Part shown: in pieces, positions 15,119 through 42,692 of the stretch | Numbering within the stretch: position 1 is the first letter of the stretch | Layout of the letters: every line of letters starts with the position of its first letter | Assembly (NCBI GenBank): GCA_009103225.1 | Contig: RHPI01000330.1 | Span: forward strand, 81,347 to 124,038 | DNA: 42,692 nt | Reading direction: 5' to 3' | DNA from: Chlorokybus atmophyticus | Taxonomy: Eukaryota; Plantae; Mesostigma and Chlorokybus algae | Position numbers and translations under genes: made by a program | The notes under the pieces: generated by a model | Told to the model about the DNA's origin: nothing | Databases searched by the model: none | The model's input: the letters and a program-made list of their open reading frames with translations, nothing else

Positions 15119-15160
15119 CTACAGGAGCAAGCGTTGGAGGTCAAGCTGCTCGCGTGGGAG

Positions 15161-20000: not shown

Positions 20001-20337
20001 TTCGGCCCACCTGGTACATCGGCAGCAGCATCGCTGCAAAACTCCATGTCACCATAGTTGTGACAGACCGCGCCAACACATGCATTGCATCGGTAACAGT
20101 CCGCGTCGAAGGCTTTGACCGCATCCCTTTCAACGATGCCCAGCAACCAGCCGGTGTCAAGGTGGCTCTGTAGGACCCCACGCATTGCCGACAGCAAGCC
20201 GTCATCACTGCCAACTCCCAGCTGCACACACGATGCTTCCCAAAGTTCTTAGCCTATCGCGATTTAAGGTGGGTACGCGAACAGCATCGTGTGACTACCG
20301 GCATGGTAGAGTTCCACACATTCAGGCATAGACTAGC

Positions 20338-22185: not shown

Positions 22186-22831
22186 CGTTGCATTCACCTT
22201 CTGCAACATCACTAGGTTGCCAAACCATTGGCCTACATTTTGGAGAATGTTTAATCTGAGGATGACAACCTGCTCAATGTGAGGGAGAACTTCCACCACA
22301 TCTGCTCTATGCTGGAACACCTTGTGCGCATCAACGCAGCACATCACGGGGCACGCACCAAGTGGACGAACCTGACTACTGTGGCAGAATTGTTCACTGT
22401 GGAATACTGGTTTCGCACACGACCTTACATTAGATGCTATTCTTGACTTTGATCGCAAAGCACAACCGGTCACTCGTCTTGACCACGCACGCTTCTATCC
22501 ATGCACCCAGCCCGACCAACCTCGCGCACTGCCCACATTGATGTCATACCCTGGCTCCTTCTACGCCTTCCACAATGGAGGGGAGGGCATGGTATGGGAC
22601 AGCACCACATGTCGGCTAGAAGAAATCGAGCGCGAACACGCCATGGGTTTCTGCCCAGACATTGTTTTTGCTCCCAACCTTAGCAACAATTACCAACGAC
22701 AGCTGCGAGGTCGCGCCATGGATCTAACTAGCATAGTGTGGTTACTTGAGACGTGTTTCGCCATGCAAGATCGTTATATGTCTCCTGAGGACTTTAAACA
22801 CATGACTGAGGGGTGGATCAATCGCCTTTAA
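22186..22831 (+). pseudogene. C5 cytosine DNA methyltransferase, C-terminal half (motifs VI-X)
   Basis: PLAYILENV (ENV at 22243-22251), VRINAAHHGARTKWTNL (motif VIII remnant), ALPTLMSYPGS, EREHAMGF (motif IX), QRQLRGRAMDLTSIVWLL (motif X). Confidence 0.87.
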
Positions 22832-23039
22832 CACGTCTCTGCTTACACAGCACTCAAGACTGCTCGCATAAACAAGCACGCAGCAGTCACGGTTGAAGAC
22901 ATCCCCGGGGTTATGGTGTGATCCCAATAAGTGGCACTGGCCTTTACGGGGATGTCTTCAACCGTACACCATAAGCCCCCTCGCCACCAAAACCACTCGT
23001 AATTAGCTGGAGGCCTTGTTGAGCAGGTGGAGAGCACAA

Positions 23040-23920
23040 TTTAGCTTCAACGTCAAGGAATTGGGCAAGTGTTCTGTCTCTCGATATTGACATCGACCTC
23101 GTTAATAAAGAGCTAGTCTTAAGGCGACAGTACAAGCTGTTCAAACTTGAGGAAGACTTGGTCGAACAACGCTGCCAAGCATTGCTTGAGGCAGGCCTCA
23201 TCGAGGAGTCCACACCTGACTTCGCCACTGCCACGGTCATGCCACTCAAAAAAGGTGCTAGCGGCAGCTGGACTGACATGCGTGTGTGTGGAGACTACCG
23301 CCCACTCAACAACAAGATCAACCAGGACCGCTACCCGAATCCCATAGCTGAAGGCATCTTTGACGACGTCGGTTCTTACATCATCTTCAGCATCCTTGAC
23401 ATTCGGCAAGGATACAAGCAGATCGAGATCCAGGTTGAGGTCAAACACAAAAGCTTATTTTGAGGCAATTGTCAACTGTACCAATTGAAGGTCATGCCTT
23501 TTGGACTGAAGCACGCACCCATCAACTTTTAGAAAGTTGTGGACAAGGCACTCAAAGGTTGTGGCTTTGCCCATTGCTGCATTGACGACATTTTTATTCT
23601 TAATCACACACCCGAAAAGCACGTGCTCCACAACAAGCAGGTGTTACGCAAAGTTAAGACAGTCGGCATGACGGTGCACCCCGACAAGTGCACCTTCTTG
23701 ATCAACAAGGTGCCATATCTGAGCCACGTGATCACGCCCAATGGTGTACACGTCCAGCAAGCAAAAGTCGAAGCGCTTGTGGCCATTCTTGCCCCTACCG
23801 ACCTCACACGGATATGCGCCTTCCTCGGGCTAGTTAACCACCACCGGCGGCTCTTATTACTAAAGAAAGAAGCTGAATGGGAGTGGAAGGACACCCGCAG
23901 GCCTTTCAGGAGCTAAAACA
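23040..23920 (+). pseudogene. Ty3/gypsy-type reverse transcriptase
   Basis: MRVCGDYRPLN, YPNP, FSILDIRQGYKQI, MPFGLKHAP, CCIDDIFI, CTFLINKVPYLSHVI, ICAFLGLVNHHRR, with stops. Confidence 0.93.
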
Positions 23921-24121
23921 GAGGCTCACCACGGCCCCCATCTTGCAACGATCCAACCATAACGTGTACAAGTCCTTCAACTTGCACACAGATGCGAGCA
24001 AGCTCGGCATGGGATCTGTGCTTGCGTAGCACGACAACAACAAAAAAGAGAGGATTGTCTGTTGCGCCAGCCGCAGCAACACCGCTGCCGAGATCAACTA
24101 CCGCAGATATGAGGGCGAGTG

Positions 24122-24545
24122 TGTTGAAGGACTAGCATGCACATGTAGTTGAGGCAAGCATAGATGCACAGAGACAGAGCTACCGCCACCAGAGCATACA
24201 CAGGTCACATCACATTCATCTATTACAAGTTGTCCTCTGGTTCTTATACCAGCCAGTTACACACACGTCTGCGTTTGCAAGCACTGCGTAAGCTATACTC
24301 AGCCGTTTGACGCGCTCTAAGCTGTGTTGTCTTCCTTACAACCAGAGCTTTCCAACAAGCTCTTACACGCCTAATATGAGTAAGTATACGCGGAGATACG
24401 AAGCAGTTAGTAAGGCTCCAGTCTGGAGTCCGGAGTCTGGTCCGACGATGCCATCTTGCTAAGTCCGGACCTAGTGCTCGTCCTTACGACCTTCTACTCC
24501 TGTGTGGAGGGTCGATGCTGATCGTATGTAGGAATACTCTCAACA
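24122..24545 (-). repeat. 3' LTR of copia-2
   Basis: TG..CA termini, repeat of 28603-29026. Confidence 0.97.
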
Positions 24546-24587
24546 CTCCCACGCGAGCAGCTTGACCTCCAACGCTTGCTCCTGTAG

Positions 24588-27500
24588 TCAAACACAGATG
24601 CCAAGTCCTGCACAACAAGTCTTGAACTTGAGTGGTGACAATGGCTTTGTCATGAAGTCCGCCAGCATGCCCTCGGTGTTGCAGTACTGGAACTCCACCT
24701 CCTTCCTTGTGACTCTGTCACGCACAAAGTGATGCATGACATCAATGTGCTTCGTCCTTGCCGAGGCGATAGGGTGCTTCAACAACTTGATGGCTCCTTG
24801 GTTGTCACAGTTGATGACGATGCACGCCATGGGGTGCTCCAAGTCTGCCATGAGCTTGCGAAGCCAGAGTGCCTCCTTCACTGCTGCTGCCGCTGCCATG
24901 TACTCAGCCTCTGATGTAGATGCTGCTGTTGTTGGCTGCAGCCTGCTGTTCCAGCTCACCACGCCTCCGTTCAGCTTGAAGACGTAGCCTGTAGTGGACC
25001 TCCTGCTGTTGAGGTCACCAGCAAAGTCCGAGTCGCAGTAGCCCTCCAACTCAGTGCTCCCGCTCCCAAACTTGATGCCAACTGTTGCGCTCCCAGCAAC
25101 ATAGCGTAGTACTCCCTTTGCTGCTCTCCAGTGCTCCATGCTCGGTGCAGACATGTAGCGAGCAAGTACTCCCACAGCATGTGCAACATCGGGACGTGTG
25201 CACACTGCCAGATAGAGCATGCTGCCTACCAGCTCACCATATGGATACTGAGCCTTGTCGAGTACCTCCTCATCCTTTGCCTTGATGAGGGCAGTGCCAA
25301 GTGCCAACGGTGTGGTCTTGGTCTTCGCTTCAGTGAGCCCAAACTTGGTGACGAGTCTTCTCACCATCTGCTCCTGACTGATCTTGATTGTGCGAGCCGC
25401 CCTGTCGCGCTCAATCACCATGCCAAGGAACCACTTGGCCTCTCCAAGATCACGAACTGAGAATGCTTGCTGCAAAGCAAGTTTCGTCTCCTGCAGGTGG
25501 TGCACCTGCCTGGCGGTGATGATGATGTCATCAACATACACGAGCAGCCAGACCTTGTTGTCTGCATGGATGAAGAGCCCAGGGTCTGCAGAGGATGCGG
25601 TGAAGCCAAGTGCCTCCAGCTCCTTGGTGAGCTTGATGTGCCACATACGCGGTGCCTGTCGCAGCCCGTACAGTGCCTTGATCAGCTTGCACGCTGTGCC
25701 TCTCTCCCCTTCTTCATATCCAGGTGGTTGCTCGATGAAGATCTCCTCCTCCAGCTCTCCGTAGAGGAAGGCAGTCTTCACATCCAGGTGATGCAGCTCT
25801 AGGTCTTCAGCAGCAACCATAGCTAGCAGTGCACGGAAGGTGGTATGCTTACTTGCAGGTGCAAACACTTCGTTGAAGTCCACACCTTCCTGCTGCAAAA
25901 AGCCCTTTGCCACCAGTCTTGCCTTGTAGCGCTCAATGTTGCCCTGACCATCACGCTTCACCTTGAAGACCCATTTCACTGGAATGGTCTTCACTCCTTG
26001 CGGTAACTGCTCCAGTGACCAAGTGTTGTTGGCATGGAGTGACGCAATCTCCTCGTCCATAGCACGCTGCCATTGCTCCGCATCTGGTGCTAACAATGCC
26101 TCCTCGTAGGTGCTTGGCTCCTCATTCTGCACACTGGCGACGTGTGCCTTGTGTAGGAAGTCAGGTGCCTTTCTCTCCCTCACTGGGTATCTCCGAGCTG
26201 CGTGCTCCTGCTGCAGGTGCGACTGCTTGTCTGCTACAGTGGAGTCCTGCTCACCCTTATCGTCGATGATGGCCTTGCCTGTAGCCTCCACTGTTTCAGG
26301 ATGCTCCGGCTGTGCTTCATCTTCAGGAAAGAAGCCTGCTTCTGGTTGTGATAATCCCTCGTGGAAAACCACCTCTCTGCTCACAATGATCTTCTGAGTG
26401 TCCTCGAGCAAGATCCTGTAAGCCTTGGAACCCGGTTCATAGCCAACGAAGATGCCCTTCTTGCTGACCGGCTCCAGCTTGTGCCTGAGCTGTTTAGGCA
26501 CTAGTGCATATGCCGTGCATCCAAACACACGCATACCACTCACATCTGGTGTGGCTCCATAGAAGTGCTCCCACGGAGTCTTCTGCTCTGAGCTCACCGG
26601 AGACCTGTTGCGGATGTAGTTGGCAGTGAGTACCGCCTCCTTCCACAGACTGTCTTCCATCTTTGTGTCGTTGAGCATGGCTCGAACACGCTCCAAGAGT
26701 GTCCTGTTGAGGCGTTCAGCTGCTCCATTCTGCTGCGGTGTGTAGGGTGCAGTTGTCTCGTGGCGTATGCCCTTGCTGGCGAAGAACTCCTTCAACTCCT
26801 TGTTGATGTACTCCCCTCCTCGATCACTCCTCATTGCCTTCATCTTGTTGCCAGACTGGGTCTCCAACAAGGCCACGACTGTGCGCACAGCTCCAGCAAC
26901 TTCTGACTTGAGCGTCAATGGAAAGATGATGGACAGCTTGCTGTAGTCGTCGAGGAATGTAGCAAAGTACCTGGCCCCTCCCTTCGCCACAATGCGCATA
27001 GGGCCACAGACATCCATGTGCACAAGCTCGCAAGGATGCTGACTGCTAGAAGAGGATGATGGGAATGGCATAGCATGCTGCTTTGCAACCAGGCATGGTT
27101 CACAAAGTGCACCTGATGCTTTCTTGAGTTCTTCTGTGCTGAGATGGATGCCCTTGACCATCTTCTCAGCGACAAGGCGAGTGAGGTTGACGTAGCTGAG
27201 ATGCCCGAACCTCCGATGCCACAATGTTGGCGACTCCTTGTCCTTCACCACCATGGCTTGAATGTCTCTGTCTTGAGGCTGCTCCACGTGGTAGAGCCCT
27301 CCCGGATCAGCGATTCCAACCATGTGCACGACCCCATCAAGGATGACTGAGCAGCCACCCTTCCGAAATAGGATCTCCGCGCCTAAGCGCTCCGCAACCC
27401 TCACAGAGAATAGACTCGCAATAGCCTTAGGAACATGCAGGACGTTGCGTAACAACACCTCGCGTAGTGTGTTACCAACCTTGCACTGGAGTCGTACGTT

Positions 27501-28475
27501 GCCAACTCCCTCAGCCACCAGTACTTCGCCACCGAAGCCCGCCACCTTGATTGTGGACGTCAGCTTCTTGTAGCCCTCCATCACCTCCTTGTTTGGTGTG
27601 AGATGACGATCGCAGCCAGAGTCCACCACCCAGAAAGCTGTGCCCGCCCTCGAACTGGATGCAGTGAAGGCGACATGTTTCTCCTTGTGTTGGTGCTCGT
27701 TGCCGCTGTTGCTGGTGCTTGCTCTAGGTTGCCCCTGTTGTTTCTTCCTACAGTCCTTCACAATGTGCCCCTTCCAACCACACCAGTGGCATGTGAGGTC
27801 TTTGTGACGAGGATTGCCTGGCTTGTTGCCCTTGTACTTCTCTTCATGGTTGCTCTTCTTTGCGTGCTTGCCGGTGTAGAAGGCGACGGCATCCGCTTGC
27901 TCGTCCTTCTTCACAACCCTCTGCTCCACGGTGAGCAGCTTCGGTAGCACATCGTCCAACGTCAACTCCGATGATGACGTCTCCAGCAGGGTTGCGACGA
28001 CCTCGTACTCTGCTGGTAGCCCTGCAACAATGGCCAGCACTACCTCCGTCTCCCCCATGTTGTGGCCGACGTTGATGAGGTCCGCCCACAGCTCTCTCGC
28101 GCGCGCAACATACTTTGTGATGGGTTCTGCTGCCTCCTTCCTGAGTGCGCTGAGCTGCTTGCGTAGATGCAACTTTCTGGCATTGTTCTTGGCTCTGAAA
28201 ACGGCTGATAGCTTTTCCCAAGCTTGTCTACCATCTTCACATGCAGTGAGCATGGGAAAGTGATGCGGTTTGCTGTTCAACACAAGCAAAGAGTGTGCTT
28301 CTGCTGAATGCTCTGACCACACAGTGTTCGCTCCTGGTGTTGGTGGTGGTGCCTTCGGATCAACGTACTTCCACACCTTCTTGTGGATGAGCAAGGCCTT
28401 CATCTCCACGCACCATGTGTTGTAGTTGTCGGTGTCCAGCTTTGCAATCTGCCCCTTGTCGTAGGTCGCCTCCAT
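24588..28475 (-). CDS. gag-pol: copia-2 Gag-Pol polyprotein, 1295 aa from the ATG at 28475
   Basis: Single ORF with zinc knuckle, DSG protease, GAG-pre-integrase, rve integrase, RT (YVDD) and RNase H (YCDSD..EAEY..CDN..KHID). Confidence 0.96.
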   Translation of the reverse strand: MEATYDKGQIAKLDTDNYNTWCVEMKALLIHKKVWKYVDPKAPPPTPGANTVWSEHSAEAHSLLVLNSKPHHFPMLTACEDGRQAWEKLSAVFRAKNNARKLHLRKQLSALRKEAAEPITKYVARARELWADLINVGHNMGETEVVLAIVAGLPAEYEVVATLLETSSSELTLDDVLPKLLTVEQRVVKKDEQADAVAFYTGKHAKKSNHEEKYKGNKPGNPRHKDLTCHWCGWKGHIVKDCRKKQQGQPRASTSNSGNEHQHKEKHVAFTASSSRAGTAFWVVDSGCDRHLTPNKEVMEGYKKLTSTIKVAGFGGEVLVAEGVGNVRLQCKVGNTLREVLLRNVLHVPKAIASLFSVRVAERLGAEILFRKGGCSVILDGVVHMVGIADPGGLYHVEQPQDRDIQAMVVKDKESPTLWHRRFGHLSYVNLTRLVAEKMVKGIHLSTEELKKASGALCEPCLVAKQHAMPFPSSSSSSQHPCELVHMDVCGPMRIVAKGGARYFATFLDDYSKLSIIFPLTLKSEVAGAVRTVVALLETQSGNKMKAMRSDRGGEYINKELKEFFASKGIRHETTAPYTPQQNGAAERLNRTLLERVRAMLNDTKMEDSLWKEAVLTANYIRNRSPVSSEQKTPWEHFYGATPDVSGMRVFGCTAYALVPKQLRHKLEPVSKKGIFVGYEPGSKAYRILLEDTQKIIVSREVVFHEGLSQPEAGFFPEDEAQPEHPETVEATGKAIIDDKGEQDSTVADKQSHLQQEHAARRYPVRERKAPDFLHKAHVASVQNEEPSTYEEALLAPDAEQWQRAMDEEIASLHANNTWSLEQLPQGVKTIPVKWVFKVKRDGQGNIERYKARLVAKGFLQQEGVDFNEVFAPASKHTTFRALLAMVAAEDLELHHLDVKTAFLYGELEEEIFIEQPPGYEEGERGTACKLIKALYGLRQAPRMWHIKLTKELEALGFTASSADPGLFIHADNKVWLLVYVDDIIITARQVHHLQETKLALQQAFSVRDLGEAKWFLGMVIERDRAARTIKISQEQMVRRLVTKFGLTEAKTKTTPLALGTALIKAKDEEVLDKAQYPYGELVGSMLYLAVCTRPDVAHAVGVLARYMSAPSMEHWRAAKGVLRYVAGSATVGIKFGSGSTELEGYCDSDFAGDLNSRRSTTGYVFKLNGGVVSWNSRLQPTTAASTSEAEYMAAAAAVKEALWLRKLMADLEHPMACIVINCDNQGAIKLLKHPIASARTKHIDVMHHFVRDRVTRKEVEFQYCNTEGMLADFMTKPLSPLKFKTCCAGLGICV

Positions 28476-28602
28476 TTCTGTCGAGCCTGCCTTTCTTGCA
28501 GTTGACACCCAAGGCTCTGCTACCAACAAGCTACCGTAGTGCAGAACTACTATGCACACAAGCTAGTCTCACACTCCTCAAGCGTAGTGTGGGCCCATAA
28601 CC

Positions 28603-29026
28603 TGTTGAAGGACTAGCATGCACATGTAGTTGAGGCAAGCATAGATGCACAGAGACAGAGCTACCGCCACCAGAGCATACACAGGTCACATCACATTCAT
28701 CTATTACAAGTTGTCCGCTGGTTCTTATACCAGCCAGTTACACACACGTCTACGTTTGCAAGCACTGCGTAAGCTATACTCAGCCTTTTGACGCGCTCTA
28801 AGCTGTGTTGTCTTCCTTACAACCAGAGCTTTCCAACAAGCTCTTACACGCCTAATATGAGTAAGTATACGCGGAGATACGAAGCAGTTAGTAAGGCTCC
28901 AGTCTGGAGTCCGGAGTCTGGTCCGACGATGCCATCTTGCTAAGTCCGGACCTAGTGCTCGTCCTTACGACCTTCTACTCCTGTGTGGAGGGTCGATGCT
29001 GATCGTATGTAGGAATACTCTCAACA
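28603..29026 (-). repeat. 5' LTR of copia-2, followed on the minus strand by PBS GGTTATGGGCCCA (28590-28602)
   Basis: TG..CA termini, PBS abuts the LTR. Confidence 0.97.
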
Positions 29027-29347
29027 GAGTGCCTTGCCGCTTTGTGGGCCACTTTTTCTTTAGGCCATTTTTGTTTGGGCGACAGTTCAATTTTATCACC
29101 AACCATCAGCCCCTGCGCTGGCTCATGACCAACCAACGCTTGACCGGCAAGCTGGCTCGCTCGGCACTCCTCCTCAAAGCGACCGACTTCCAGATTGAGC
29201 ATCGGGCAGGCCTCGCCAACAAGGACGCCGACGGCCTTAGCCGCAATCGTCACCTCTCCACCAAGCCACCGGAGCTCGCCACGGGTTGACATCCTCAGCT
29301 TTTCCACCAGGGGTAGGCACCATGTTTGCTATAGCAGCATTGCGTTC

Positions 29348-29460
29348 GGGCCGCACCACAGCCACAAGGGACACAACCTTACCGGATCTGGGCCGCACCA
29401 CAGCCACAACGGACACAGCATCACTGCATCCGGGCCACGCCACGGCCACAACTAATACGT
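29348..29460. repeat. 42-bp degenerate tandem repeat, about 2.7 copies
   Basis: gggccgcaccacagccacaa starts at 29348 and 29390, with a variant at 29432. Confidence 0.8.
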
Positions 29461-29933
29461 CACCGTCGTTGGACAATGAAGACCAAGACATGCCTGCTCT
29501 ATTCGCATCGAAGACAAGGAGGTCCCTGCTCCCCATCTACGAGAGGGCATCATCGCCGCTCCACAGGGCTTTGTGCGCGGACCAGTCTGGTCGCGTGTTC
29601 CGCGGCCTGCGAACCAGAGGAGCACGGGATTGAACCGGTACAGGTTTTTTGAAGCAAGCCCGGTCCGGACATAAGCATCGTAAGAACCAGGCCTAGCACG
29701 TACAGTGACAACCGATCGGGCGCCTCACACGTCAGCAGAGGTAAGTACGACAATGACCCTGTCGCATACTCAAACCCTAGTCGCTATGTGTCGTACTGGG
29801 GCACTGCTTGCGGCGTTGCAACCGGCAAGCTATCGGAGGCGGCGGTGCTAAGGGTAGGCCTTGAACATGTGGTGGTGTTGAAGCTTCAGTGCATGTGGCT
29901 TGCAAGTAGCGGATGCCAACAAAGCTATGATTC

Positions 29934-31240
29934 ATGCACTACTGTACAACGGCTCCTGTGGCCGGTGCTACTGCCAGTGTCTCAGTCGACAATGCGGCAC
30001 TGTTGCGCTGCCATAGAGTTGGCAACATACTGTCTACAATCTGCAGAACAAAATTCAACGGGTCCACCTGGTATGAGGTCGCCACAATCAAGCACGCAGA
30101 GGATATTTGGGCGCTTGTGGAAGCATACCCCACCCTGGCACACTCCAGGCGCATCAAAAAACAAGGCAGTGATTGGGCGAGGCAATACTCATTACGTCAC
30201 GAGCGACGGCTTGTTCGAGAGCATCTGTGCACAAGAGAACATTGCCATTGGCACCCCGACACGGCGGATAGTGCGCGACTACAAAGCCTATATGAGGGAC
30301 GGCCTGGTATACAGGTGTGCTTTATATCTTGATTATGCAGCACAGCTGTCATCGACAGTCCCACCAACGACTGTCACTGGTGCGGCTGTCCGTTAAAGGG
30401 TCTCCATCTCTGATATCTACAGTCCCAGCATTGACAGCCGCGCAGACTGTCAATGCTGAGACTGTCAAACAGCGACTGACAGATATTCTCTCTCTCTCTC
30501 ACACACAGGCGCGACTGCAAGGATGCTGTGATGCTGGATGGAAACAGGCCAGCCATCGTCAATAAAATCTTCATGTTCTTTCACACCGAGTGCCATGTGT
30601 ACATTGCTGTCAACCGCTACAGCCTGCAAACAGATGCTGCTGGAAATCAATGCATGGACGCAGACTCCGATGCCTTGCATGTGGGGCGTTTGGAAAACAC
30701 CAACATTCTTGTCCGAGGCCACCAGCTGCTGCGCAAAGTGTGGATGCTGACGGAGAGACCAAGGCTGCTCCCCTACATGCTGGCTTACGATTTCAGCAAC
30801 CCAAAGCTGCGATTGCGAGCAGCTAATATACCTCTGCCAGTATGGCCTGAAACCGGGGATGTGCTGCTTGTGAGACATGAGGATGAGAAGAAGTCGGTCT
30901 TTGACTTTCGCGTGCCAACTGACCCACCAGCACCTGTATCTGATGATCCTCCGCCATGGATTGTTATTGTTCGATAGCCTCAAGTTGACGATGAAGGCAA
31001 CATGTTGGTTGACTACCTGAAGCCTGCTCCTAGATCAGTGAGTGCTCGCCAAGGCCTACCGCGGTGGGTGGTCAATAAGGACTGTCGCAACCAGAAGGTG
31101 TCACCCATTGCGGTCAAGAGGAAGCTCAACTGGCAGCAAGTTGATCAAGGCAGATGGCAAGAGCAGCCAACAATTGAGGTTGTGCGTATGTTTTACGACA
31201 GGCACATCATGTACTACAAAGCAGGCGAGGCTGAGGCAGG
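29934..31240 (+). pseudogene. Unknown gene P (unit B), probably spliced, disrupted
   Basis: ORFs 29934-30332, 30528-30977 and 31002-31304. The last two are in one frame across a TAG (IVR*PQVDDEGNMLVDYLK). Homologous to 1644-1931. Confidence 0.6.
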
Positions 31241-31517
31241 TACGCATCACTTGTCTCATCAGTGTTGTTCCTTGACAGTCCCATGGACAGTCGGCTGTCC
31301 ATAGGACTGTCGGGTAACAACACTATCAGTGTGTGTTTTTGGCACAAGGCATTACACAAGGCATTACGAAGCACGCATTGGTTACTGTGAGTAACACACT
31401 TGTACATTTCACAGATTATGTACACAAGGAAGGGTCAAGCGTACCAGCAGATCTACTTGCAGCGCGCAAAGGCCAACTGCTAGGCAACTTACACTAAAGC
31501 TATAAACCAGGGAAACA

Positions 31518-33250
31518 TCAACCAGCATCAGGAGGAGGAGGTGGAGGACGAGGAGGACCAGCAGCAGCACCAACAGCAGGAGGAGGAGGAGGAGGAGGAG
31601 GAGGTCTTGGTATGGAGCACTGAGCGCGGTAGCTGCTGAGGGCTGATACACCTGCGGGGGTTTGCAACCACGCCCATGCAGCGGCATAGTCCATTGGACG
31701 CTGTAGCTGATACAATGGCGCTGCCGCTGGTCCTCGAAATGAAGCCATCCCTTCGTCAAGGTCACGGAGGTGGTGCACAAACGTTGATAGCATGACAACC
31801 ATTACGTCAAACATGGAAATTAGGGTAGCGCACCTTGTGATTTCGGGTTCCTGCAAGATGCCAGTGTAGTGCGACTCGGCGTTCCTGTAGAAGTCCCAGA
31901 ACCCACTGGCACCTTGTTGAAAGCCAGTGAATAGAATGGCACTCCGTTGTGATTGCTGCCACGCCTGCCTGATTGCAGCTGCACTCCGTATGAAGATACC
32001 CGGCCGTTCGACTGGGTCCTCCCGAAATCTTTGTGGCCAATCGTCAAAGAGCTGAGTGTTTGGCAAACGGCCCAACACTATTGTACGTTCGTAGTTTCGC
32101 AGTGCAAAAAATTGGTTGGAGACCTCACGCGCCCACTCCCTGTTTTTGCCGATGAGGTACTGCGCACGATCCTGCGCTACCTGCTGGAGCTGTGCTCTGT
32201 GATGAGCCACCTGCCTGTCCAGCTGTTCTTTGAGGTCTCTCACCTGCTTGTCTAAAGCTTCTGCACCTGCTAGCGCTTCATTCAGCTTTTCGTCAACGCA
32301 TGGGTCGACAGCCCCTCCGACAGCCTCTGATGTTGAAGGCACTGCAGCCAGCCTCTGCTCCAACTCTTGATAGCGGGTTTGCGCCTCTGCCAGCTGCCGC
32401 TCTGCTTCATTGGCTCTTCTTGTCGCGGCATCGACAGCCGCTGCATCGACAGCCCCTCCAACGGCCTCTGATGCTGACTGCCTCGCCGCTTGCTGTGCTA
32501 CCTCCTGCTCCAGCTGGCGAATGCGCTGCCGAGAACTCTCCATCTCTTCCCCAATCTTGGCGCCCGCAGAGGAGCTAGAGGCCATTGCCAGCATGCGCGA
32601 TTGCAAATCAAAGTTTCGCAATTCGAGGTAGCGAATCTGGGCGTCAATTGATGCCGCACGCTCCTTGGCGGCTTCGAGTGCTATAGCCAACCATTTGCAG
32701 TTTGGCGACCTCAGCATCGGTGGTTGCAGCCCTCTGCTGCAACTCCTCCCTCTCCTTGCGCAGGGCGTCCACCTGAGAGTTGGAAGCGGCAGCCCTCTGC
32801 TGCAACTCCGCCAATTCTTTTGGTAGCTTGGCGACCTCAGAGTTGGCTGCAGCCCTCTGCTCCGCATGCTCCAAATCCTTGCGCACATTGTTGACCTCAG
32901 CATCGGTTAATGCAGCCCTTTGCTCCGTCTCCTCCAAATCATTGCGCAGCTTGGCAATAACAGCATCTGATGCCCCAGCCCTCTGCTCCGACTCCTGGAA
33001 CCTCTTGCGCAGCTCGGCTAAGAGTAGGTTGAACTCATCGTTTGTTCTTGATGCTGTCTTCATCGTCTCCTCCAACTCCTTGCGCACCCGGGCGACCTCA
33101 GCGTTGGCATCTGCAGCCCTCTATTGCGTCTCCTGTAACTCCTCGTGAAGGATTGCAACCTGTTGCTGCGACTCCGCTACTTTAAGGTCAAGAGTACGCT
33201 GGTAATACTGCTTGCGCGCTTCGTTCTCACACTGACTAGGCTGGTCTGCA
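31518..33250 (-). pseudogene. Long coiled-coil protein gene (unit B) with a stop and a frameshift
   Basis: Repeated EQRAA..xAEV motifs in 32644-33148, continuing in ORF 31518-32903, which ends in a Pro-rich tail. Same position and strand as 2391-4870. Confidence 0.65.
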
Positions 33251-33352
33251 GGTTGTCACGAGTTGCAAGAACGCGCTCTTGTCCTTGCTGTCGCACATAG
33301 ACATCAAGTAAGTACAGAGGCCACAACAANGTACAGAGGCCACAACAGATTA

Positions 33353-34420
33353 TCAAAGCCCCCCCCCCTCTTCTTCCACAAAGACTGTACGCGATGCAAT
33401 TATTCTCACCAATGCTTGTCTTGTAAGCCCGAGGGCGAATGACAGCTGTTCTGCAGAAATCTCCACAGCGTTTGCCACTTCCTCGCTCAATTTCGATGCG
33501 TCATTGACGGCCTTGCGGTGCTCCTCGTGGGCCTTCTTGAAACCTTCAATTGTATCACGCGCTGCTGCTAAAGCCTCCTCTCCAGCTTGTGGCCGCACAG
33601 CTGGTGGAGTTTGCCGTGCAGGAGTGTCCGGCTAAAGGGGACGTTTCTTCTCAGCTGGGGGTGTAGACATGGGGGCACTTGTTCTCTCTCTCTTTCTCTT
33701 GGCAGATGGACGAGGACTGTCATGGAGACTGTCGTGAGGTGGACTGTGGTGAGGTGGACTGTCGGCTGGTGGACTGTCCGCGCGACTGTCATAAGGTGGA
33801 CTGTCCTTGGGACTGTGGGGAGGTGGAGTGTCAGGTGGAGGATTTTCACGCTCAGCTTGTCTCTCCAGCCAGGTCTTCAGTGGTGGAGGTGCGGGGTGCA
33901 AGGGCACTCTCAACTGATGGAGATGATCGTCGTGTGAATGGGGAGTATTAGGGTTGTTGATCGCCACCAACAAAGATGCTGCAGCTTGTGCCTCCGCCCG
34001 TGTGTTAGCTTCGCTCTGCTCTTTTACAAGTGTACGCACAATGTCCCGCTTGAGTTCGTCAAGCCATTCCTTTCTGGACTCCTTGAAGCCCTTCTGGAGC
34101 ATACCCCGGATCTTTCTCTCCCAATCCTTTTCCCAGTCCTCTCCCTTCAGTGCCAATGCTGTCGCCTGCCTGATGAGAGCCCCCTCTCTGGTAGCAATAG
34201 CTGCTGTCTGAGTTTTGTGCATCTCGGCAGTCTTTCCCTGGAGACCAGCGACCTTTTCCTGCAAAAACAGGTAACAGTTTAAGCAAATGTGTGAAGTGAA
34301 AGGTGCACCACATGCTGACGTACCCTGATCACGTTCTCTTGTTCTATTCGTAGGTCTAACTCCCTAATGACTTGTGTTAAGGCGTCGACTTGTCTGTTTG
34401 CGGCCTCTTTCATTTCGTAG
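33353..34420 (-). pseudogene. Unknown gene R (unit B) with a DSPP-repeat tract
   Basis: ORFs 33632-34264 and 33353-33598. The DSPP repeats are encoded by GACAGTC motifs. Weak homology to 4965-5900. Confidence 0.45.
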
Positions 34421-34619
34421 GCAGCATCATAAACCGCTTTACAGAAATGAACAGATATTTGACGCTGAATATGGGCTTTAGAATCTATCTGTTGACACAT
34501 GCACGGGATCTTGGTTGTTAGCATACATGTCACAGTGCATGCAAGTGCACTGCGACAGGAATGCAAACAGCAGACTGTCGATAAGACTGTCGGATAGACT
34601 GTCATTCTTGGAAGACTGT

Positions 34620-36740
34620 CAGTACAACTCACCATTCTTGTCTTTGCGTCCGCACTGGCATGCTGAAGACACGCTGGACTAAACGCATGGAATATGCGAA
34701 GTCACTCTCGCCCAGCTGCCTTGGTGGCTTGCTGGTAAGCAACCACATAGCGTCCTCCGTGGTCAACTTCCAACTTCTCGCAAGCCTCTACGCCGCATCC
34801 TCCGTTTGCCACAGTTGGGTCTGCCAGCAAAGAAGGCAAGTTAGTTTCCAGTGTCACAGTTGTGGAGTCATTGACAGTCTCGCATTGACAGTCGCATTAA
34901 CAAGGCATGCAAACTGGGCATGCAGCAATGCAATCACACTTACTTGGTCTGTCTGCCCATCTGGTGGCGCAGGGAAAGGGGTGTAGTCTAAGAGTAGCTC
35001 CTCCCCTGCCTTGATGTCCCTAGTCGCATACACAGTGACAGCTGGGTGGCCGACGTCATCGAAGTCCGAGTAGAACATGACGTTGGGCTGAGTGTGCCCA
35101 TGTGCGAATTGATATAAGCCGCTACACAGCCAGTGCGGGGGTGCCCGTCGATGACAACCTGAGATTGGCTTGGTGTATCTGGTGGAAACAGGTTGACGTG
35201 ATATCGCCGGTGGTGTCGGATGTCGCTGATTTGTTGGTAACGATGCAAGACCTCCTCCATCTCATGTTGCTTAAACCATTTGCCATCATATGGCAACAGG
35301 TAAGCCTCTGCACAGATGCGCACAAGTCATGAGTGATCCGCGAGTACACAGAGAGACATGCACACAAAGATACACACGCACACACGTGCACGTACCGTTT
35401 GGAATGTCTTCGCAGGCAAACAGTCCCAGTCCAGCACCAGTGATGGTTGAGTCTTTGATCAACCAGTTGTGCGTAAGATACTTGAACTGCTCGTTGACTG
35501 GGATGCGTGTGGATGCTCTTGCATCCTCCACAATATCCAGTCTCCACAGCTGGTGCTTGTCTCCAGCGCTACGATGGATGAGCTTGAGGTTTGGTATCTC
35601 CCGGTCAGTCTGTTTAATGCAGTGATAAGTAACCATCAGACTCTAGCGCAAAGACAAACACAGACCATTACATTGGCATAGGCTGTCATGATATGTTCTC
35701 ACCCTCAAGTAGTCAGCAGAAAGTTTGGGTGGCGCTTTAGAATCTGTTGAAGGGTAGCGTTTCACTTGGAATTTGTTCATCTCTTCAAGAGCACTGGCGA
35801 ATTCCGCTGCATAATCCACCGCTGCGGCTTAGCGACGCCTTGAGGGTTTCCGCTTCGGTGGACTAGGTATCGCACCCTCCTCGTCCTTGTCCTCGTCCTC
35901 GTCCTCATCCTGTGGTTCTCCTGCTACTCCTGCTCCTCTTGATCTTCCTGCTCCTCGAGATCGTGTTGCTCTGCGTGTCCAGGTATGCATAGCCGCCAGC
36001 TGTTGCATTTCTTCGTACAGTTCTTTGGTCTGAAACGTGGCAGGGTTAGTACGCATGTTGCAGTATGGGTTCATTGCTGCTGTGCGAATTCAGCAACTCG
36101 CATACCCTGGAATAGCCTTGATGTCTGCCATCTTGCAGTGCTTCAAGTTTGGGACTATGGGATTGGGGTAAGGGGGCAGTTGCTCATCCTGCAGCACGCC
36201 GCTGCTGGTGAGTTGCATTGTGCGTTCATACATGTCACGAAACTTCAAGTAGTCCAAGAACACGACGGTTGCACTCATATTACAACCGATATGCGCAGTA
36301 TTCAAGCAACGGCTGTCGAGTATCTGCACCATGCGCCAATGCGCTGTACGCACGCGCAAGGCACAGATCATTGACAGTCCAGGCAGGATGTTGCAAAAAC
36401 TTGGATCAAGAATGCCTGAGGGTTCCTACCCTGATGGATTGCTGGATTTCCTCTGCCAACTTTTCGAGTGTAGCCTTGTCCTCCCTCCCTCCCTTATTGC
36501 TGAGCACGCGCATCATTCGGCACAGAGCACCGTTCCAGTGCTGTGCGTTTTTCGTGGGCTTGGTCTCTCCCATACCAGGTTGGCCGTTTGCATAACGGTG
36601 ACCAGCATGCACGTTGTTCATACAGTAAAGGCAGCCCCATATAAACTGCGGCGCTGTGGACGACCTCCTTCGAGCCATGGTGTACTGCCTGGGACTGTCC
36701 ACTGTGCCAAGAGACTGTCGACGCCTACCCAACAGCACCC
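34620..36740 (-). pseudogene. SET-domain gene, unit B; SET core about 34980-35465, intron 35308-35395, frameshift near 35090
   Basis: LIKDSTITGAGLGLFACEDIPN, then EAYLLPYDG...VVIDGHPRTGCVAAYINSH, then in another frame PNVMFY..VTVYATRDIKAGEELLLDY. The GT-AG intron restores the frame. Confidence 0.82.
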
Positions 36741-37014
36741 TGAAACAAACCTTTCACCCCCAATCTTCGCTCAACAACAACAACAACCATGCCAAAGGTC
36801 TTGCAACGCTTGTGTACGCCGCCAACCCACAGACAGCCGCTGATCATGGTGCTGACAGCCGTCAATTCCTAGGCGAGTTCAACCCTAACTTACCGACAGC
36901 CGCGTCGCTCTCTTGGCGAGTTGCATTGTTGCGCTACTTGTGCGGCTTGTGTGGCTTGTGCGAACTCACAACGCTTGTGCGGCTTGTGCGGTTGTTTATG
37001 TAAGGCACTGGTCC

Positions 37015-37345
37015 GACAGTCCCTGTTGACAGTCGACAGCTTGGGTTGCTCACTTGCTGTGGTGCCAGGACACTTGCACTTCTGCTGTGCTGTTTGCCAG
37101 TTGATTTCAGCTGTTGAAAGGTGAGCAGGTTGCTTGCAAGCTTGAATGCTTGCTTGCTTGCATGACAGTCTCTGTTGACAGTCAACAGCTTGGGTTGCTC
37201 ACTTGCTGTGGTGCCAGGACACTTGCACTTCTGCTGTGCTTTTTGCCAGTTGATTTCAGCTTTTGAAAGGTGAGCAGGTTGCTTGCAAGCTTGAATGCTT
37301 GCTTGCTTGCATGACAGTCTCTGTTGACAGTCGACAGCTTGGGTT
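37015..37345. repeat. 149-bp tandem repeat, about 2.2 copies, each carrying two GACAGTC motifs
   Basis: Units start at 37015, 37164 and 37313 and are near-identical. Confidence 0.92.
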
Positions 37346-37413
37346 GCCCCAAGTGTGAAGTCAAACTGTTTGCTCTAAGTTCAGTTGTTTGTTCAGGCAG
37401 TCTAACTGACACC

Positions 37414-39630
37414 ATGTCCACTGGGGAGGCAAGACAAATGCCCGCTGCAGCTGATTGCTTCAGAGCAAAGGGGAACCACTTGCTGGGCCAAGTGACGGGC
37501 TCGCAGTTTCTGATGAAACCAGAGTTCAAGCATATGCGCACAACGCATATCAACAACCTGGCGAAGCTGAAAAAGAGATGCTGAGCAAGTGGCCACCACT
37601 TCAAGGCATGAAAGGCACAGACTTCAAGCAGAACGCCCAGCACCGGCATGAGCTGGACGATGTCTGCGAGACTGTATTGCAGGCGTCAGAGCAACTGGTC
37701 TTTGAGACAGACCACACCCTGAAATGGACCAAAGGCAAGCTGCTAGTAGAGTTGAGCTGTGTTGAAGCAAGCCTTCCAAGCAGCATGGCACTTACTCCTC
37801 GGTTTTATCATGTCTCCTTTTTTGTCTTGCCATTGACAGTCCTAGCCCTGCATATCATTCATGCTTTCAGTTCTCGGTTGCTCACTAACCAGTTGCGTTA
37901 TGCTATGTTCCAAGATGTGACCTCCTTGCTGATGGCTACCAAAGGACTGTCGCTGCCATGTCTCATCTGCTTGTGTTTCTGCAGCACAAATCAAGAGTCA
38001 TGTTCTCCAGCTACAGTATTCTGTTGGCGCGAAGTGCGGTAGTGATTACGGGCAAAGCATGGAAGAACGCAATGCTATTAAGAAGCAAAGGCGATCCAGC
38101 GACAGGGAAGCTACCCAAGGCAGCCGCGCTACTGAAGCTGCTGCTGGCTGGGGCATGACTTTTTCGATTGGCAGGGACTTGAGGGCCAACCAGCAGGTGG
38201 TCATGCTTGCACCTTTGACTGCTGAGCCTCTAACAGATGCTCAGTACCGGGCCACTTGGCTGAAAGAGAGGTAACTATTGTGCTGTCGGCTGTCGATCAA
38301 GTTCTACAGTCCTCACTGGTTTGCTTAGCTGTGCCTCCATGGCTGCGTATTGGATTCACATATGCTGCCTGCTAACTCAGAATTTCCTAACAGGGGTGCG
38401 GACGGGTTCGCTGAAGATCAGGTGTTTGACATTGCCAACAACGCAGTAGTTGTTGGCGTCGCCACCATCAAGTCCGTATGCGAGCCAGAACAACCAATGC
38501 GGACGTACAATGTCGGTGTTACCCACTGGATGCCAGTGAGAAGCGAGGATGGCAACCTTGGCATTCGCCTACCTGTGAAAGAGAGGCATTTTCTCTATGG
38601 CCAGCTGGCAAGCAGCTGCCATGGTGGGCGTACTCTGGAGGTACATTGCTTGCTGTGGATATGCTCCTGCTGTGACTGTATGGTGCATGAGTGCAAGAAC
38701 ATTTCTGTGTTAAACAACATGCAGGGCAGGGAGATGGAGTGGCCCATGATGTTCTTGGCCGGCGGAGGCATCTGTCCATGTGAGGCATGCGGCAACGACG
38801 ATCGCATTGTGGTGCCGGGTTGCATCAAGGACATACTGCCTACGACCGCAGCTCGGCACAGCACAGACACAGAGGTCAGTAAGGGCTGTTGTCAGCGCAT
38901 GGCATGACTCATTGGCACGCGTTTGCTCGCACACTCACAGTAGCACACATACCATCTCTTGCAACATCACGCACAGTGTCCAACTATCTGTTGCTCACTG
39001 CCTCTCACAGACACGGACACACACACACACACACACCATGCTTGTATGGCGTTATGTTATACCGCGCGCTCGTGGTCCTCACAGTCACTTGACAGTCGCA
39101 GGCTGTCCCATATGGACAGTCGCCAATGCACTCTATTGACGGATGTATGACATGTGCAGGCTGCTGGAGCCATCTCCGACTGTGAAGATCAAGCAGTTGC
39201 AATGGACTTGGATTTTGCAGCTGCAATTGTTTGCGACACCAAACCAAACGCCCCCACTAGAGAGCAGGCGATGGACGTGTACGAGTACTACCAGCACATT
39301 GAGCACGCGGTATTCACCAGTCGTCACCAGCTGCCATTCAAGGATCCTGAGCGAATGGAGTCTTATCGAGACGAGAGTATCTTGCGAGCAGTTGTCAGCT
39401 TTGCAGCAAAGAAAAAGTGGTTGGTGGCCAACGATGAGGTTGAAGGAGGGTGCGAGTGGCGATATGAATCTCGCAAACTACCAGGTATGCATATTGAACT
39501 GCAAGTCATTACACAGTCCTTTGGTAGTTGTCGAGGCGACTACACATTGCAGAGCTGTTGAGCGAGGGAAGGAAGAAAAAGCCATGGCAACCCAAGAAGC
39601 AGTGGATGCGACAGCCCTCGTCATCCTAGG
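37414..39630 (+). pseudogene. Unknown multi-exon gene Q (unit B)
   Basis: GQVTGSQF..THINNLAK, RATWLKER followed by GT, DQVFDI..ATI..RTY..WMPV, EWPMMF..GICPCEAC and LPFKDPERM..AVVSFAAKKKW all match gene Q-A. Confidence 0.65.
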
Positions 39631-40083
39631 TGGGTGGTTTATTGTGCTACAGTTGCATGTGTGTGTCAACACTGTATGTCTTGTGTAAGCACAGGTAGAC
39701 TCACAGTTGTTTTGCAGACATTTGATGCACGAGTTGGCTGCAGGGGCTGTTTACAGAGGCTGTCAAACAAGGGTGTCCCTGGCTCCAAAGGCTGTCGTTG
39801 GCTCCTGAGGCTGGGAGTCAGCACACAATGTGGAAAGATGGGAGTGGCTTCACATGGGGTCCAGCTGCCCAGGCGAAGGTGCAACACAACAAAGCTGTTG
39901 TCAGCTGCGACTGTCAACAGCAGCGTGCAGTGCATGTAGGAGACTGTAGGTATAGTACATGACGCTAGCTTAATACTGATGATCATGATCAGACTGTCCT
40001 TTGACAGTCCATTCCAGCATTTTTGTGAATTGTATGCATGGCGGATTGTATGCACTAGGCATGGTGCATGAAACAGCACGCAC

Positions 40084-40640
40084 ACCATGCATGGCTTCCA
40101 TGCATGCGACATTATGACAGACCATGATTGGTGCACCAAATAAAGGTAGACCGCACCATGTATGGTGCGGTGCCTGGCAGGACCATACGTGGTGCCGCTT
40201 GTGGACCATGTATGCGCAACACCTTGTCGGTAGCCATGGACCATTCATGGTGCGACTGTCGACCAGACTGGCACCATATGTGGTCCACTGTGCAAGGAGG
40301 GCAGCGCACCATGATTGGTCCAGGCAATCTCAGTAACAAACATGACTTGCGGTCCGTATCCATGGACCATGTATGGTGCGACTATCAGGCACCGGACATG
40401 AAGCAAGCAACAAACCATGGATGGTCCGCTGTTCCAGGGGGCATCGCACCATGCATGGTGCATAAATCTCATGCATACTGGCCACCATGCCTAGTGCGTC
40501 CCAAGGGACAATGGTACCATTCACGTGAAATTCGGACCATGCATGGTCCGACTGTCCATGAAAGCCGGACCATACATGGTCCGTCAATTTCACTTAGCAG
40601 GGGAAAATCCCGGTCCTGCGTCACGGACCACTCATGGTCC
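40084..40640. repeat. Cluster 3 of ACCA-N4-TGGT (right end of unit B)
   Basis: About 12 perfect copies (spacers tgat, tgta, tacg, ttca, tatg, tgat, tgta, tgga, tgca, tgca, taca, ctca) plus near-matches. Confidence 0.9.
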
Positions 40641-41009
40641 TTGAACGTCAATCCGTGTGACCCTCATAATCACTCAAGCAGCAGCGACGTAGGACAAGCC
40701 CAAGACACACAGCAGCAGCAAGCGCACGAGCCTATGCAGAACCCTCCAGAACAAAGGTGAGGGGATGCCTTTAAAAACCCCTCACACAGCCCCAGCAGCA
40801 TCAGCAATAAACACGGCACCAACAATCTCGCAAGCAGCACCAGCACTAGCAAACTTTTAAAAATCACTGCAATCGCCCCTCTCAACTGAAGACTTCGCCA
40901 GGATTGTTGCTCAAGCGACAGTGTCGGCCTTAGCAGCAACAGCGCCTCACACCCTTCAAAACCAGCCGCCAGCGCCAGCCTCACCTCAGCAGTAGCTTCT
41001 GGCGAACCT

Positions 41010-41710
41010 GCCTGGGCCGCTTGCGCCCTCGGTTCTTCTGTGGGGGACCAAAGGATGACGTCAGAAATTGGTTAGATCATGTTCACATGCATGCAGGTGC
41101 TTTGCAGGGGAGTGATGAATAGAAAAGCCGTTTATTGAATTTGAGTTTGCTAGGGGCCAGCTGCCTCCTGGTTTGTAAACCTCCCACCGATAGTGAAAAG
41201 TCAATGGCAGGTGTTAGAAACAAGTTAGCGTGAATTTCTTAGGCAACGAAGTAGTGTGCAGCAGCTCAATAAGCTCAGGCAAGGGAACGAAGCGGTTGTC
41301 ACCATCTTTGCTATCAGATTCAAGCACCTCCTGCTCACGACTGCGTTAAAACCGCCAGCTATGATGCAATTGCTATTCTTGTGGAATGCAATGCACAAGT
41401 ACCTGACCGACGCTGCCATGATGCAAGCCCCCAATGATCTCGACACAGCTATTGCTGTTACACAGCTATTGCTGTTTACACACGCTTGTTGCGAAGACGC
41501 TCACCCCAGCCTCAATTCCTCTTTTCGGTAGCCCAATTATTAGCTACGCAGGTGGTCCGAAGACAGTCATCAACACGGGGAGCAACTTCAGCTAATCGTA
41601 CCTCCACCTCAGCATTCAGACCTAGACTTTCTGCTACAGCTGACATGGACAAGCCCCAATAATTCGATTGTAACAATTACGGGCATATAATCAGATACAG
41701 TTCTCAGCTA
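41010..41710 (+). pseudogene. Degenerate Ty3/gypsy-type gag, with a possible protease remnant at about 42080-42300
   Basis: RPRFFCGGPKDDVRNWL, LNKLRQGNEAVVTIFAIRFKHLL (retrotransposon gag-like), knuckle remnant FDCNNYGHIIR. Downstream FTLGWDFICANNIIVN resembles the C-terminal half of a retropepsin. Confidence 0.55.
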
Positions 41711-42610
41711 CCCAGAAGGACTCAGCAGCAACAACAGCAACGCACACCACTCGGGGCATTTCAAAATGCTCAATTGGTTGCTCAAATACAAATCAAAGAG
41801 AGCGAGGGAGGAGTACCTGCAGCAGAAGAAGATGATGCACCTCTTATGCTGAACTGGACTGTTAATTAAAACTTGTAACCGTGATGGAGAAGCTGGAGCC
41901 ACGCGCTGGAGCCATGCGGAGACAAGTGTTGGAGCCACGCACTGGAGCCACGCGGAGATACATGAAGCCAGAAGAAGACTGGTGTGCACGGTTGCAGTAA
42001 AAGTTGGCGTGATACAGAATCTTCTTTAAGCACAATGCGTGAGAGCTTTGCACATCAACTTTGCTTTCTAGTGCATGTTAGTGCGTCACCCACACAGGTT
42101 ACCTTTGACGGTGGTCAAGCTTCATGCTCCTCATCCTGACTAAACACACAGTTCAGTCACTTTGCACAACACAAGAATTGAGCACAACTGGCACCTGTTA
42201 CCGGACAATTATTTGTCTTTACCCTTGGGTGGGACTTCATATGTGCCAATAATATCATCGTCAACAGAGATTGGCTACAGCTACCAAGCACAGGGCGTTT
42301 GTCATTAATGGTATCCGCACATGCAGCTACAGCATGCCCAAGTAGTGAAAACAATTGTGACCACAACTCAATAAGACTCAGATCGCGATGACCTTGGAGC
42401 ATATCTGCTACAGTATGCAACAGCATCACATCTGACGTGGCTCAGCTGTTACTTCTCGCATATTCACAGGGGACTTTCCATCAATCGTCCGATAAATGAG
42501 AAGGAAACCACCTAAGGCTTGGGACCTCCTGGGAGAGCATGTGAACAAGATGTTAGCAATGCTGGAAGGTCTCACTACCCATCTGCTAACTTAGCAGATG
42601 GCATAGTGAG

Positions 42611-42692
42611 TGTTGAGAGTATTCCTACATACGATCAGCATCGACCCTCCACACAGGAGTAGAAGGTCGTAAGGACGAGCACTAGGTCCGGA
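42611..42692 (+). mobile_element. Start of a third copia-family LTR, cut by the window end
   Basis: tgttgagagtattcctacatacgatcagc... matches the copia-2 LTR. Preceded by gtgag rather than the gtgggag purine tract, so it is a 5' or solo LTR. Confidence 0.93.

Follow-up and report, generated by a model that had tools for sequence, protein, structure and literature searches.

Paralogous multi-gene repeat units of the green alga Chlorokybus atmophyticus carry different private DNA words

To our knowledge, the way in which repeated or selfish DNA is told apart from the rest of a genome has been worked out in molecular detail for very few systems, of which VANC/VANDAL is the chief one. In En/Spm (CACTA) transposons, subterminal repeat arrays are bound by the TnpA protein. 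The VANDAL21/VANC21 pair of Arabidopsis is a sequence-specific anti-silencing system (PMC5735166; Sasaki et al. 2023, PMC10398659). VANDAL elements are Mutator-like transposons that encode a VANA transposase and VANC, and binding of VANC to its motif leads to the loss of DNA methylation over the whole element (PMC5735166). In VANDAL21, the VANC21 motif is 9 bp long, enriched in the family and rare in related families, lies mainly in non-coding DNA, is partly tandem and runs in one orientation (Hosaka et al. 2017, PMC5735166). Variable tandem peptide regions have also been reported in VANC proteins (PMC5735166). Elements carrying an epigenetic enzyme are represented by fungal DNA transposons that encode TET/JBP dioxygenases (PMC12730594). 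In this work, a stretch of 42,692 nucleotides of contig RHPI01000330.1 from Chlorokybus atmophyticus (assembly GCA_009103225.1, positions 81,347 to 124,038, forward strand), hereafter the window, was analysed. It contains two paralogous multi-gene units, A and B, and the subject of this report is the short DNA words that are scattered through their introns and spacers: GACWGTC, with A or T at its centre, in unit B, and GYCTATGA in unit A.

Private words in two paralogous units

The two units occupy the following parts of the window.

About 29900-40665: unit B, with genes P (plus strand), SQ (a SET-coiled-coil gene, minus strand) and R (plus strand), and a palindrome array at the right end
1643-9780: left part of unit A, with a truncated P domain (1650-1991) and the SQ paralogue, whose SET open reading frame (ORF) lies at 6838-7635 on the minus strand; 8 of the 17 copies of GYCTATGA
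15587-19045: right part of unit A, with a 57-bp tandem repeat in five copies holding four GCCTATGA (16077-16361), gene R (about 16390-18060) and a palindrome array (18500-19033); 8 of the 17 copies of GYCTATGA

A first-pass annotation of this DNA had counted 35-37 copies of GACWGTC in unit B where 1-2 would be expected. The count was right to within one or two, since 38 copies are present in 30350-40560, where about 1.9 are expected (scaled to 10.2 kb), and 39 in the broader interval 29017-42607. The whole 42.7-kb window holds 44 copies, compared with a mean of 7.95 in 100 dinucleotide-preserving shuffles (standard deviation 2.95, largest 14). Only five fall in the remaining 29 kb: three in 1-9780, none in the first of the copia elements that interrupt the region, one in 15587-24121 and one in the second. 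The motif is indeed rare in unit A and in the copia elements, as had been claimed. GACWGTC is the commonest 7-mer of unit B, and an unbiased scan for over-represented degenerate 8-mers placed [TC]GACAGTC at the top of that unit, with 31 copies observed against 1.3 expected and a score of 30.9, compared with a maximum of 8.0 in 40 shuffles. The variant GACAGCC adds 17 further copies in unit B, compared with two in the rest of the window.

The heptamer had been described as palindromic, but the site is not truly symmetric. Once the copies are aligned by their central A, positions -2 and -1 favour T and position +1 avoids A, which gives a site close to TTGACAGTCB. T occupies position -1 in 20 of the 39 copies, creating TGACAG. 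There is no strand bias, with 17 central-A and 22 central-T copies on the plus strand, and the motif is found in both directions relative to transcription.

GACWGTC is mainly a non-coding word. Of the 38 copies in 29900-40640, introns hold 18, spacers 12 and exons 8, equivalent to 8.4, 8.2 and 1.1 per kb, respectively (binomial P about 1e-8), and the non-coding DNA of unit B taken alone has 30 copies against 0.75 expected. Most introns of unit B longer than 100 nt hold the motif, and those of 60-90 nt hold none. Six of the eight exonic copies belong to a single tandem array that encodes a DSP(P) repeat. The copies group in 19 clusters with unrelated flanks and spacers, which indicates that they are not one satellite, and 14 of the 19 close neighbours are spaced 11-15 bp apart. 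These data agree with the first-pass description of a motif lying mostly in introns and spacers (30 of 38 copies non-coding), often in pairs, and generating a DSPP peptide repeat, which is real and lies in the minus-strand ORF 33632-34264. The motif positions quoted there were all right to within one base; the copy given as 30444, for example, lies at 30445, and the six copies within 37015-37332 were placed correctly. The copies are arranged along unit B as follows.

30354-30466: P intron 1, four GACWGTC and GACAGCC variants, partly an inverted repeat with a 19-bp stem
31274-31311: P intron 2, three GACWGTC within a near-perfect 56-nt hairpin-forming palindrome
33715-33805: SQ reading frame, six GACTGTC in a tandem array of 12, 15 and 27 bp (33714-33833) whose minus strand encodes the DSP(P) repeat
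34573-34620: SQ intron 34437-34632, four GACTGTC spaced 12-17 bp
34873-34893: SQ intron 34821-34943, directly after the SET domain, two GACAGTC
36373-36379: SQ intron 1 (36324-36429), one GACAGTC
36693-37332: divergent spacer between SQ and R, two copies just upstream of the SQ start and six in a 149-bp tandem repeat
37835-39121: R introns, with 37835 and 37945 in intron 37746-37984, and 39091 and 39115 in intron 38875-39159
39909-40556: R 3' end and terminal array, with 39909, the inverted pair 39992/40003, 40254 and 40550

The 149-bp tandem repeat (37015-37347) comprises 2.2 copies that are 97% alike, and each repeat holds a pair of GACAGTC 13 bp apart. The palindrome of P intron 2 (31265-31320) is made of three or four copies of the motif and folds, as DNA, at -19 kcal/mol.

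The main new result is that paralogue A has a private word of its own. The same unbiased 8-mer scan gave G[CT]CTATGA as the top word of unit A, with 16 copies observed against 0.76 expected and a score of 15.5 (shuffle best 6.2). The window holds 17 copies of GYCTATGA between 2140 and 19729; 16 lie within unit A and the 17th, at 19729, is just past the end of the unit. The word is absent from unit B, from the copia elements and from the part of a gypsy-like fragment beyond 19729. Its sites include 6327, 6638, 7337, 8368, 16089-16315, 17241 and 17825, and its core is ATAGAC/GTCTAT. It is asymmetric, not self-complementary, and present in both orientations relative to transcription. The nine modelled GT-AG introns of unit A contain eight A-words and one B-word, and seven of the nine have the A-word. 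With these introns as an internal control, the near absence of the B word from them (one copy) rules it out as a general intron signal of the genome.

The two words take orthologous positions in the paralogues, as shown by the following places.

Intron after exon 1 of the SET gene: 8368 in A; 36373 in B
Intron after the YLR exon: a full copy at 7337 in A; in B the GACAGCC variant only, in 35643-35702
Intron after the SET domain: 6638 in A; 34873 and 34887 in B
Intron following the one after the SET domain: 6327 and two ATAGAC in A; four copies at 34573-34620 in B
Tandem repeat just upstream of R: 57 bp in five copies with GCCTATGA in A; 149 bp in 2.2 copies with GACAGTC pairs in B

Four intron positions of gene R are common to A and B (TWLKxR|GT, E|GT, [QE]|GT and RKxPG|GT). 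The introns hence predate the split between A and B, and their motif content turned over later, in a concerted way within each lineage.

Each repeat of the 57-bp array of unit A (16077-16361) has GGACAGTGCCTATGAG, in which a B-like GACAGT is joined directly to the A word, and intron 35643-35702 of unit B holds GACAGCCTATG. Both may hint at a longer ancestral composite site.

Genes, ends and surroundings of the units

Unit A is colinear with unit B at the protein level and is a paralogue of it, split by a copia insertion. The exon model of unit B is a manual one that combines ORFs, splice signals and the conservation between A and B, without RNA data, and all 16 of its introns are GT-AG. Exons were used one at a time in protein searches and folding. 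The genes of unit B are listed here.

29900-31483, plus strand: gene P, with introns 30315-30508 and 31240-31414 and an in-frame stop at 30975-30977
31518-36678, minus strand: gene SQ, with eight modelled introns and at least six stops or frameshifts
37415-39939, plus strand: gene R, made up of seven exons, of which exon 1 is frameshifted and exon 4 has four conserved Cys

Each unit has three genes and not four. The SET gene and the gene called Q had been treated as separate by the first-pass annotation; most likely they form one minus-strand gene, SET followed by coiled coil, joined by exon 34633-34820, which has a counterpart in unit A at 6387-6530. In unit B, SQ runs from a basic N-terminal exon through an acidic linker, the SET domain (exons 34944-35642), linker exons, the DSP repeat and 21-residue coiled-coil repeats to an orphan C-terminal domain. 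Tandem peptide repeats stand at the equivalent linker position of SQ in both units and are mutually unrelated, DEPAGG-like in A (5120-5293) and DSPP-like in B (33714-33833). Amino-acid identity between A and B is 56% in the P domain, 33-41% in the SET exons, 29-36% in the linker and coiled-coil exons, and 30-38% in the R exons; the P value refers to the conserved C-terminal domain of P in unit B, compared with 1650-1832 of unit A. The basic first exon of SQ retains its Cys/His positions between the paralogues. Units A and B are dead copies, with at least eight in-frame stops or frameshifts in B and several in A, and nothing therefore operates at the locus now.

The SET domain (PF00856) exceeds the cut-off of 22.4 in both units, with 24.3 bits in A (6841-7635, minus strand) and 23.9 bits in B (34857-35078, minus strand). 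Both units contain the SET motifs GAGLGLF and EELL(M/L)(E/D)Y. At the position of the canonical NH they both read NS (6900-6950; 35085-35110), and this coincidence marks it as an inherited feature and not as decay. The SET domain of unit B is also frameshifted at about 35090. An exhaustive search of 1.84 billion representatives with the 265-residue SET ORF of unit A returned 29 weak matches, confined to residues of about 133-252, the SET core (best E 1.9e-8); the nearest solved structure is ASH1L, with an E of 0.06. The two best relatives of the SET core (E 1.9e-8 and 6e-6) are SET proteins of 428-439 residues, at 10001-11287 of contig L001 and 1265-2584 of contig L003. The metagenome and Logan contigs of such relatives show dense, contiguous gene calls with a YqaJ-like nuclease or a UvrD-type helicase nearby, and those of the two best matches look like large viruses. 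As relatives of the units these two were ruled out, having no P-, Q- or R-like neighbours.

Other searches were negative. Across 40 ORFs or exons from both units and the flanking DNA, Pfam matches were limited to SET, generic coiled-coil noise and a reverse transcriptase fragment located outside the units (23539-23913). Word-based protein searches, one starting from the Q C-terminal domain and the other from the SET ORF of unit A, were blank within length limits, pattern scans of metagenome and viral contigs with the A/B alignments of the P domain and R exon 5 yielded no relatives, and Rfam and tRNA scans found nothing.

The ends of the units are marked by a second repeat, SACCA-N4-TGGTS, which has 24 matches in the window against 0.43 expected, all of them in 1354-1630, 18500-19033 and 40120-40639. 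Two of these arrays form the right end of each unit, and the third lies to the left of the truncated P gene of A; the left end of B is missing or was not recognised. Besides the right array of unit A given above, they are the following.

1331-1642: left palindrome array of unit A
40120-40639: right-end array of unit B, with 11 of the 24 matches, mostly ACCATGNATGGT

The half-site of the palindrome is common to A and B, and the centre differs, being ACCATGNATGGT in B and ACCAGSNNTGGT in A. At the two ends of unit A, 1481-1642 and 18881-19045 form a 165-bp direct repeat with 92% identity, which stops exactly at the start of the P domain on the left and at unrelated DNA on the right; it may represent either a terminal direct repeat or the edge of an adjacent tandem unit. 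Outside the palindrome arrays, A and B have unrelated flanking DNA, which suggests that the units are discrete, with defined right ends.

The region is a nest of transposons, with these neighbours.

9781-15586, plus strand: copia 1, which splits unit A
24122-29016, minus strand: copia 2, which splits the gypsy-like fragment in its RNase H region
42608-42692: copia 3, which starts near 42608
About 19100-24121, resuming at 29017-29290: gypsy-like fragment, with a protease-like DTG near 19700, a reverse transcriptase (23539-23913) and an RNase H end (28996-29289)

The three copia copies belong to one family and are about 97% alike over the coding region, and the long terminal repeats (LTRs) of any one copy, each about 415 bp, agree at 99%. 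The top database match of the copia polyprotein is 51% identical, and the named matches are from Chromochloris zofingiensis and Haematococcus lacustris. From these matches alone the genome would probably be taken for that of a chlorophycean alga, with its own proteins missing from the database. The resumption of the gypsy-like fragment at 29017-29290 indicates that copia 2 split it; neither integrase nor LTRs were seen in this fragment, which includes an AT-rich island of about 1.6 kb (20600-22200, GC content about 0.46) and a (TA)n run at 21326-21381. Retro-element explanations of the units themselves were considered and ruled out. One giant LTR element running from the gypsy fragment through unit B is excluded, as the arrays 18500-19033 and 40120-40639 are not alike; nor does a retro-element form part of the unit, given that the sequences downstream of the two units are dissimilar. 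For an LTR retrotransposon, the sole candidate terminal repeat would be the 165 bp of A; the units contain neither reverse transcriptase nor integrase, and both strands have GT-AG introns. A single N at 33331, in an intron of SQ beside a 22-nt near-duplicated stretch and a poly-C run, and the poly-C run of 19 nt at the start of the window (1-20) are possible assembly blemishes.

What the words may be for

Words that are dense, private to a unit, non-coding, independent of orientation, partly tandem and replaced wholesale between paralogues would be best explained by selection for the binding sites of a co-evolving protein, and the occurrence of both the A and the B word in either orientation points to the recognition of duplex DNA and not of RNA. 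Our tentative reading, which we regard as possible rather than probable, is that the words are putative protein-binding sites specific to each unit and co-evolving with a binder encoded by the unit, following a logic like that of VANC without membership of that family. A and B are old, diverged and decayed copies of one multi-gene repeat unit, composed of P, SQ, R and a palindrome-array end. In each lineage, the introns, the divergent SQ/R promoter spacer and the 3' regions have become filled with a lineage-specific word of 7-8 bp, roughly TTGACAGTCB in B and GYCTATGA in A. These words may act as dense double-stranded-DNA sites for a sequence-specific protein of the unit, under selection for many sites; the protein would recognise copies of its own subfamily only and set their chromatin or transcription state, in an anti-silencing direction or otherwise, with the SET enzyme of the unit as the obvious presumed effector. 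One candidate reader of the word is the basic N-terminal exon of SQ, which has conserved Cys/His positions and is fused to the SET domain. The more specific proposal, that private words, co-evolving with their binder, let a green-algal selfish multi-gene unit steer its own histone-methyltransferase-like enzyme, or a partner of it, to copies of itself, such that diverged subfamilies no longer cross-recognise, seems to us unlikely.

Several points weigh against these proposals. No DNA-binding domain was recognised in any unit protein by Pfam or PDB sequence searches, and the AlphaFold models, with predicted local distance difference test (pLDDT) values of 56 for SQ exon 1 and 43 for the P domain, were of too low confidence to be used. 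The suggestion of an element-encoded DNA binder among P, Q and R consequently found no support, as neither Pfam nor PDB sequence searches gave a match for the exons of P, of R or of the C-terminal part of Q. The presence of NS instead of NH makes the catalytic competence of the SET domain uncertain. Both copies are broken by stops and frameshifts, and with one copy per subfamily and no relatives found, the tracking of motif by subfamily rests on a single A/B pair. No terminal inverted repeat (in a repeat search that covered 29017-42607 for B), target-site duplication or transposase was found, which leaves the mobility that a selfish unit would be expected to have unproven.

The words could instead be cis-regulatory sites of a host transcription factor, the paralogues having been rewired to different host factors. 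GACWGTC reaches its highest density in the promoter spacer between the divergent SQ and R genes and directly ahead of the SQ start, and its clustering and its occurrence in either orientation are as in enhancers; moreover, TGACAG is what we take to be the core of TALE homeodomain sites, which would fit 20 of the 39 copies. We nevertheless consider this explanation unlikely, because there are about eight sites per kb across the introns of all three genes over 10 kb with no promoter focus, a full switch to an unrelated word in the orthologous introns of A would be unusual for promoter evolution, and the resemblance to TALE sites fits half of the copies only. It is also unlikely, and to much the same extent, that the words have no function. 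In that case slippage and unequal exchange (mini- and microsatellite growth), together with palindromic duplications of small size, would have left them in non-coding DNA that tolerates such changes, and gene conversion would have made them uniform within each unit. Such an origin would account for the clusters that are tandem arrays (33714-33833, 34572-34603 and 37015-37347), one of which has grown inside a reading frame, and for the local palindromes, whose folding relative to shuffles is strong in P intron 2 (z -6.3), the 39992/40003 pair (z -4.3) and P intron 1 (z -3.8); both units are dead as well, hence under no current selection. Against it, the same 7-mer has about 17 independent locations, whose spacers and flanks are unrelated to one another, and does not recur in paralogue A, the copia elements or the gypsy fragment, whereas paralogue A shows the parallel of another word at orthologous positions. 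Slippage alone does not seed distant introns of three genes on both strands.

Two further explanations keep a role for the words and place it elsewhere. The sites might belong to a transposase or end-binding protein of the unit that has escaped recognition, as in the subterminal repeats of En/Spm or Mutator, having spread inward and serving transposition and not chromatin control. The dense end arrays of SACCA-N4-TGGTS are end-specific repeats of the protein-binding kind, and two GACWGTC lie inside the palindrome array of unit B. The dispersed words are, however, mainly internal and not terminal; the end half-site is common to A and B while the dispersed words differ, so that the two look like separate recognition systems. 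The searches also gave no sign of a transposase domain, a terminal inverted repeat or a target-site duplication. We regard this explanation as distinctly improbable. Least likely of all, and by our estimate very improbable, is a role in RNA, with inverted copies forming intron hairpins for small RNAs or for splicing modulation. GACAGTC and GACTGTC are reverse complements of each other, and the two P introns and the 39992/40003 pair fold far better than shuffles, as given above, but the direct-repeat clusters do not (z -2.1 for 34560-34625, +0.3 for 34860-34900 and +0.1 for 37010-37050). Eight copies are located in the SQ/R spacer between two modelled coding regions, the word of unit A occurs in both orientations without being self-complementary, and there is no Rfam match.

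The locus provides a natural experiment, with paralogous units that have the same genes and introns and different private words. If a host factor reads the words, it would be a clean case of wholesale turnover of binding sites. If binding sites specific to each unit are the right explanation, and a protein of the unit reads the word and the SET enzyme marks the unit, self-addressing systems would have arisen more than once and could be coupled to histone methylation.

Comparison with described systems

Like the SET lysine methyltransferases of PF00856, both units have the GxG and ELLxxY motifs, but their SET domain is an orphan and carries NS for the usual NH. The units resemble the fungal TET/JBP transposons in that a repeated unit carries its own chromatin- or DNA-modifying enzyme. 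They differ in that the enzyme is a SET-domain protein without an adjacent transposase, and a dispersed private motif is absent from the part of the description of those transposons considered here (PMC12730594).

The units share dense arrays of short repeats at their ends (1331-1642, 18500-19033 and 40120-40639), and genes with introns, with En/Spm elements. Unlike these, they yielded no CACTA termini, no other terminal inverted repeats and no transposase domain; they possess, in addition, a second, internal and dispersed motif that differs between A and B.

The first-pass annotation had likened unit B to VANDAL self-recognition. The transposase or VANC family and the single orientation of that system found no equivalent here: the units have no Mutator-like element (MULE) transposase or VANC-like family among their Pfam hits, and their motifs run both ways, some clusters being uniform and some inverted pairs, compared with one way in VANDAL. 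They also encode a SET-domain protein, which VANDALs are not known to do, and their host is an alga. The part of the comparison that concerns a unit-specific, non-coding and partly tandem motif stands, and is strengthened by GYCTATGA in unit A. Each system has a short word, of 9 bp in VANDAL21 and 7-8 bp in the units, that is strongly enriched in a single family, scarce in the relatives of that family, and present at high density mainly in introns and in intergenic and terminal non-coding parts. Tandem amplification differs between relatives, with the 149-bp repeat of 2.2 copies and the 12-27-bp arrays in B and the 57-bp repeat of five copies in A, and an element protein contains variable tandem peptide repeats. 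If the more specific proposal were true, the units would represent an origin of VANC-like, sequence-specific epigenetic self-recognition independent of the plant Mutator elements, and one with a built-in 'writer' enzyme.

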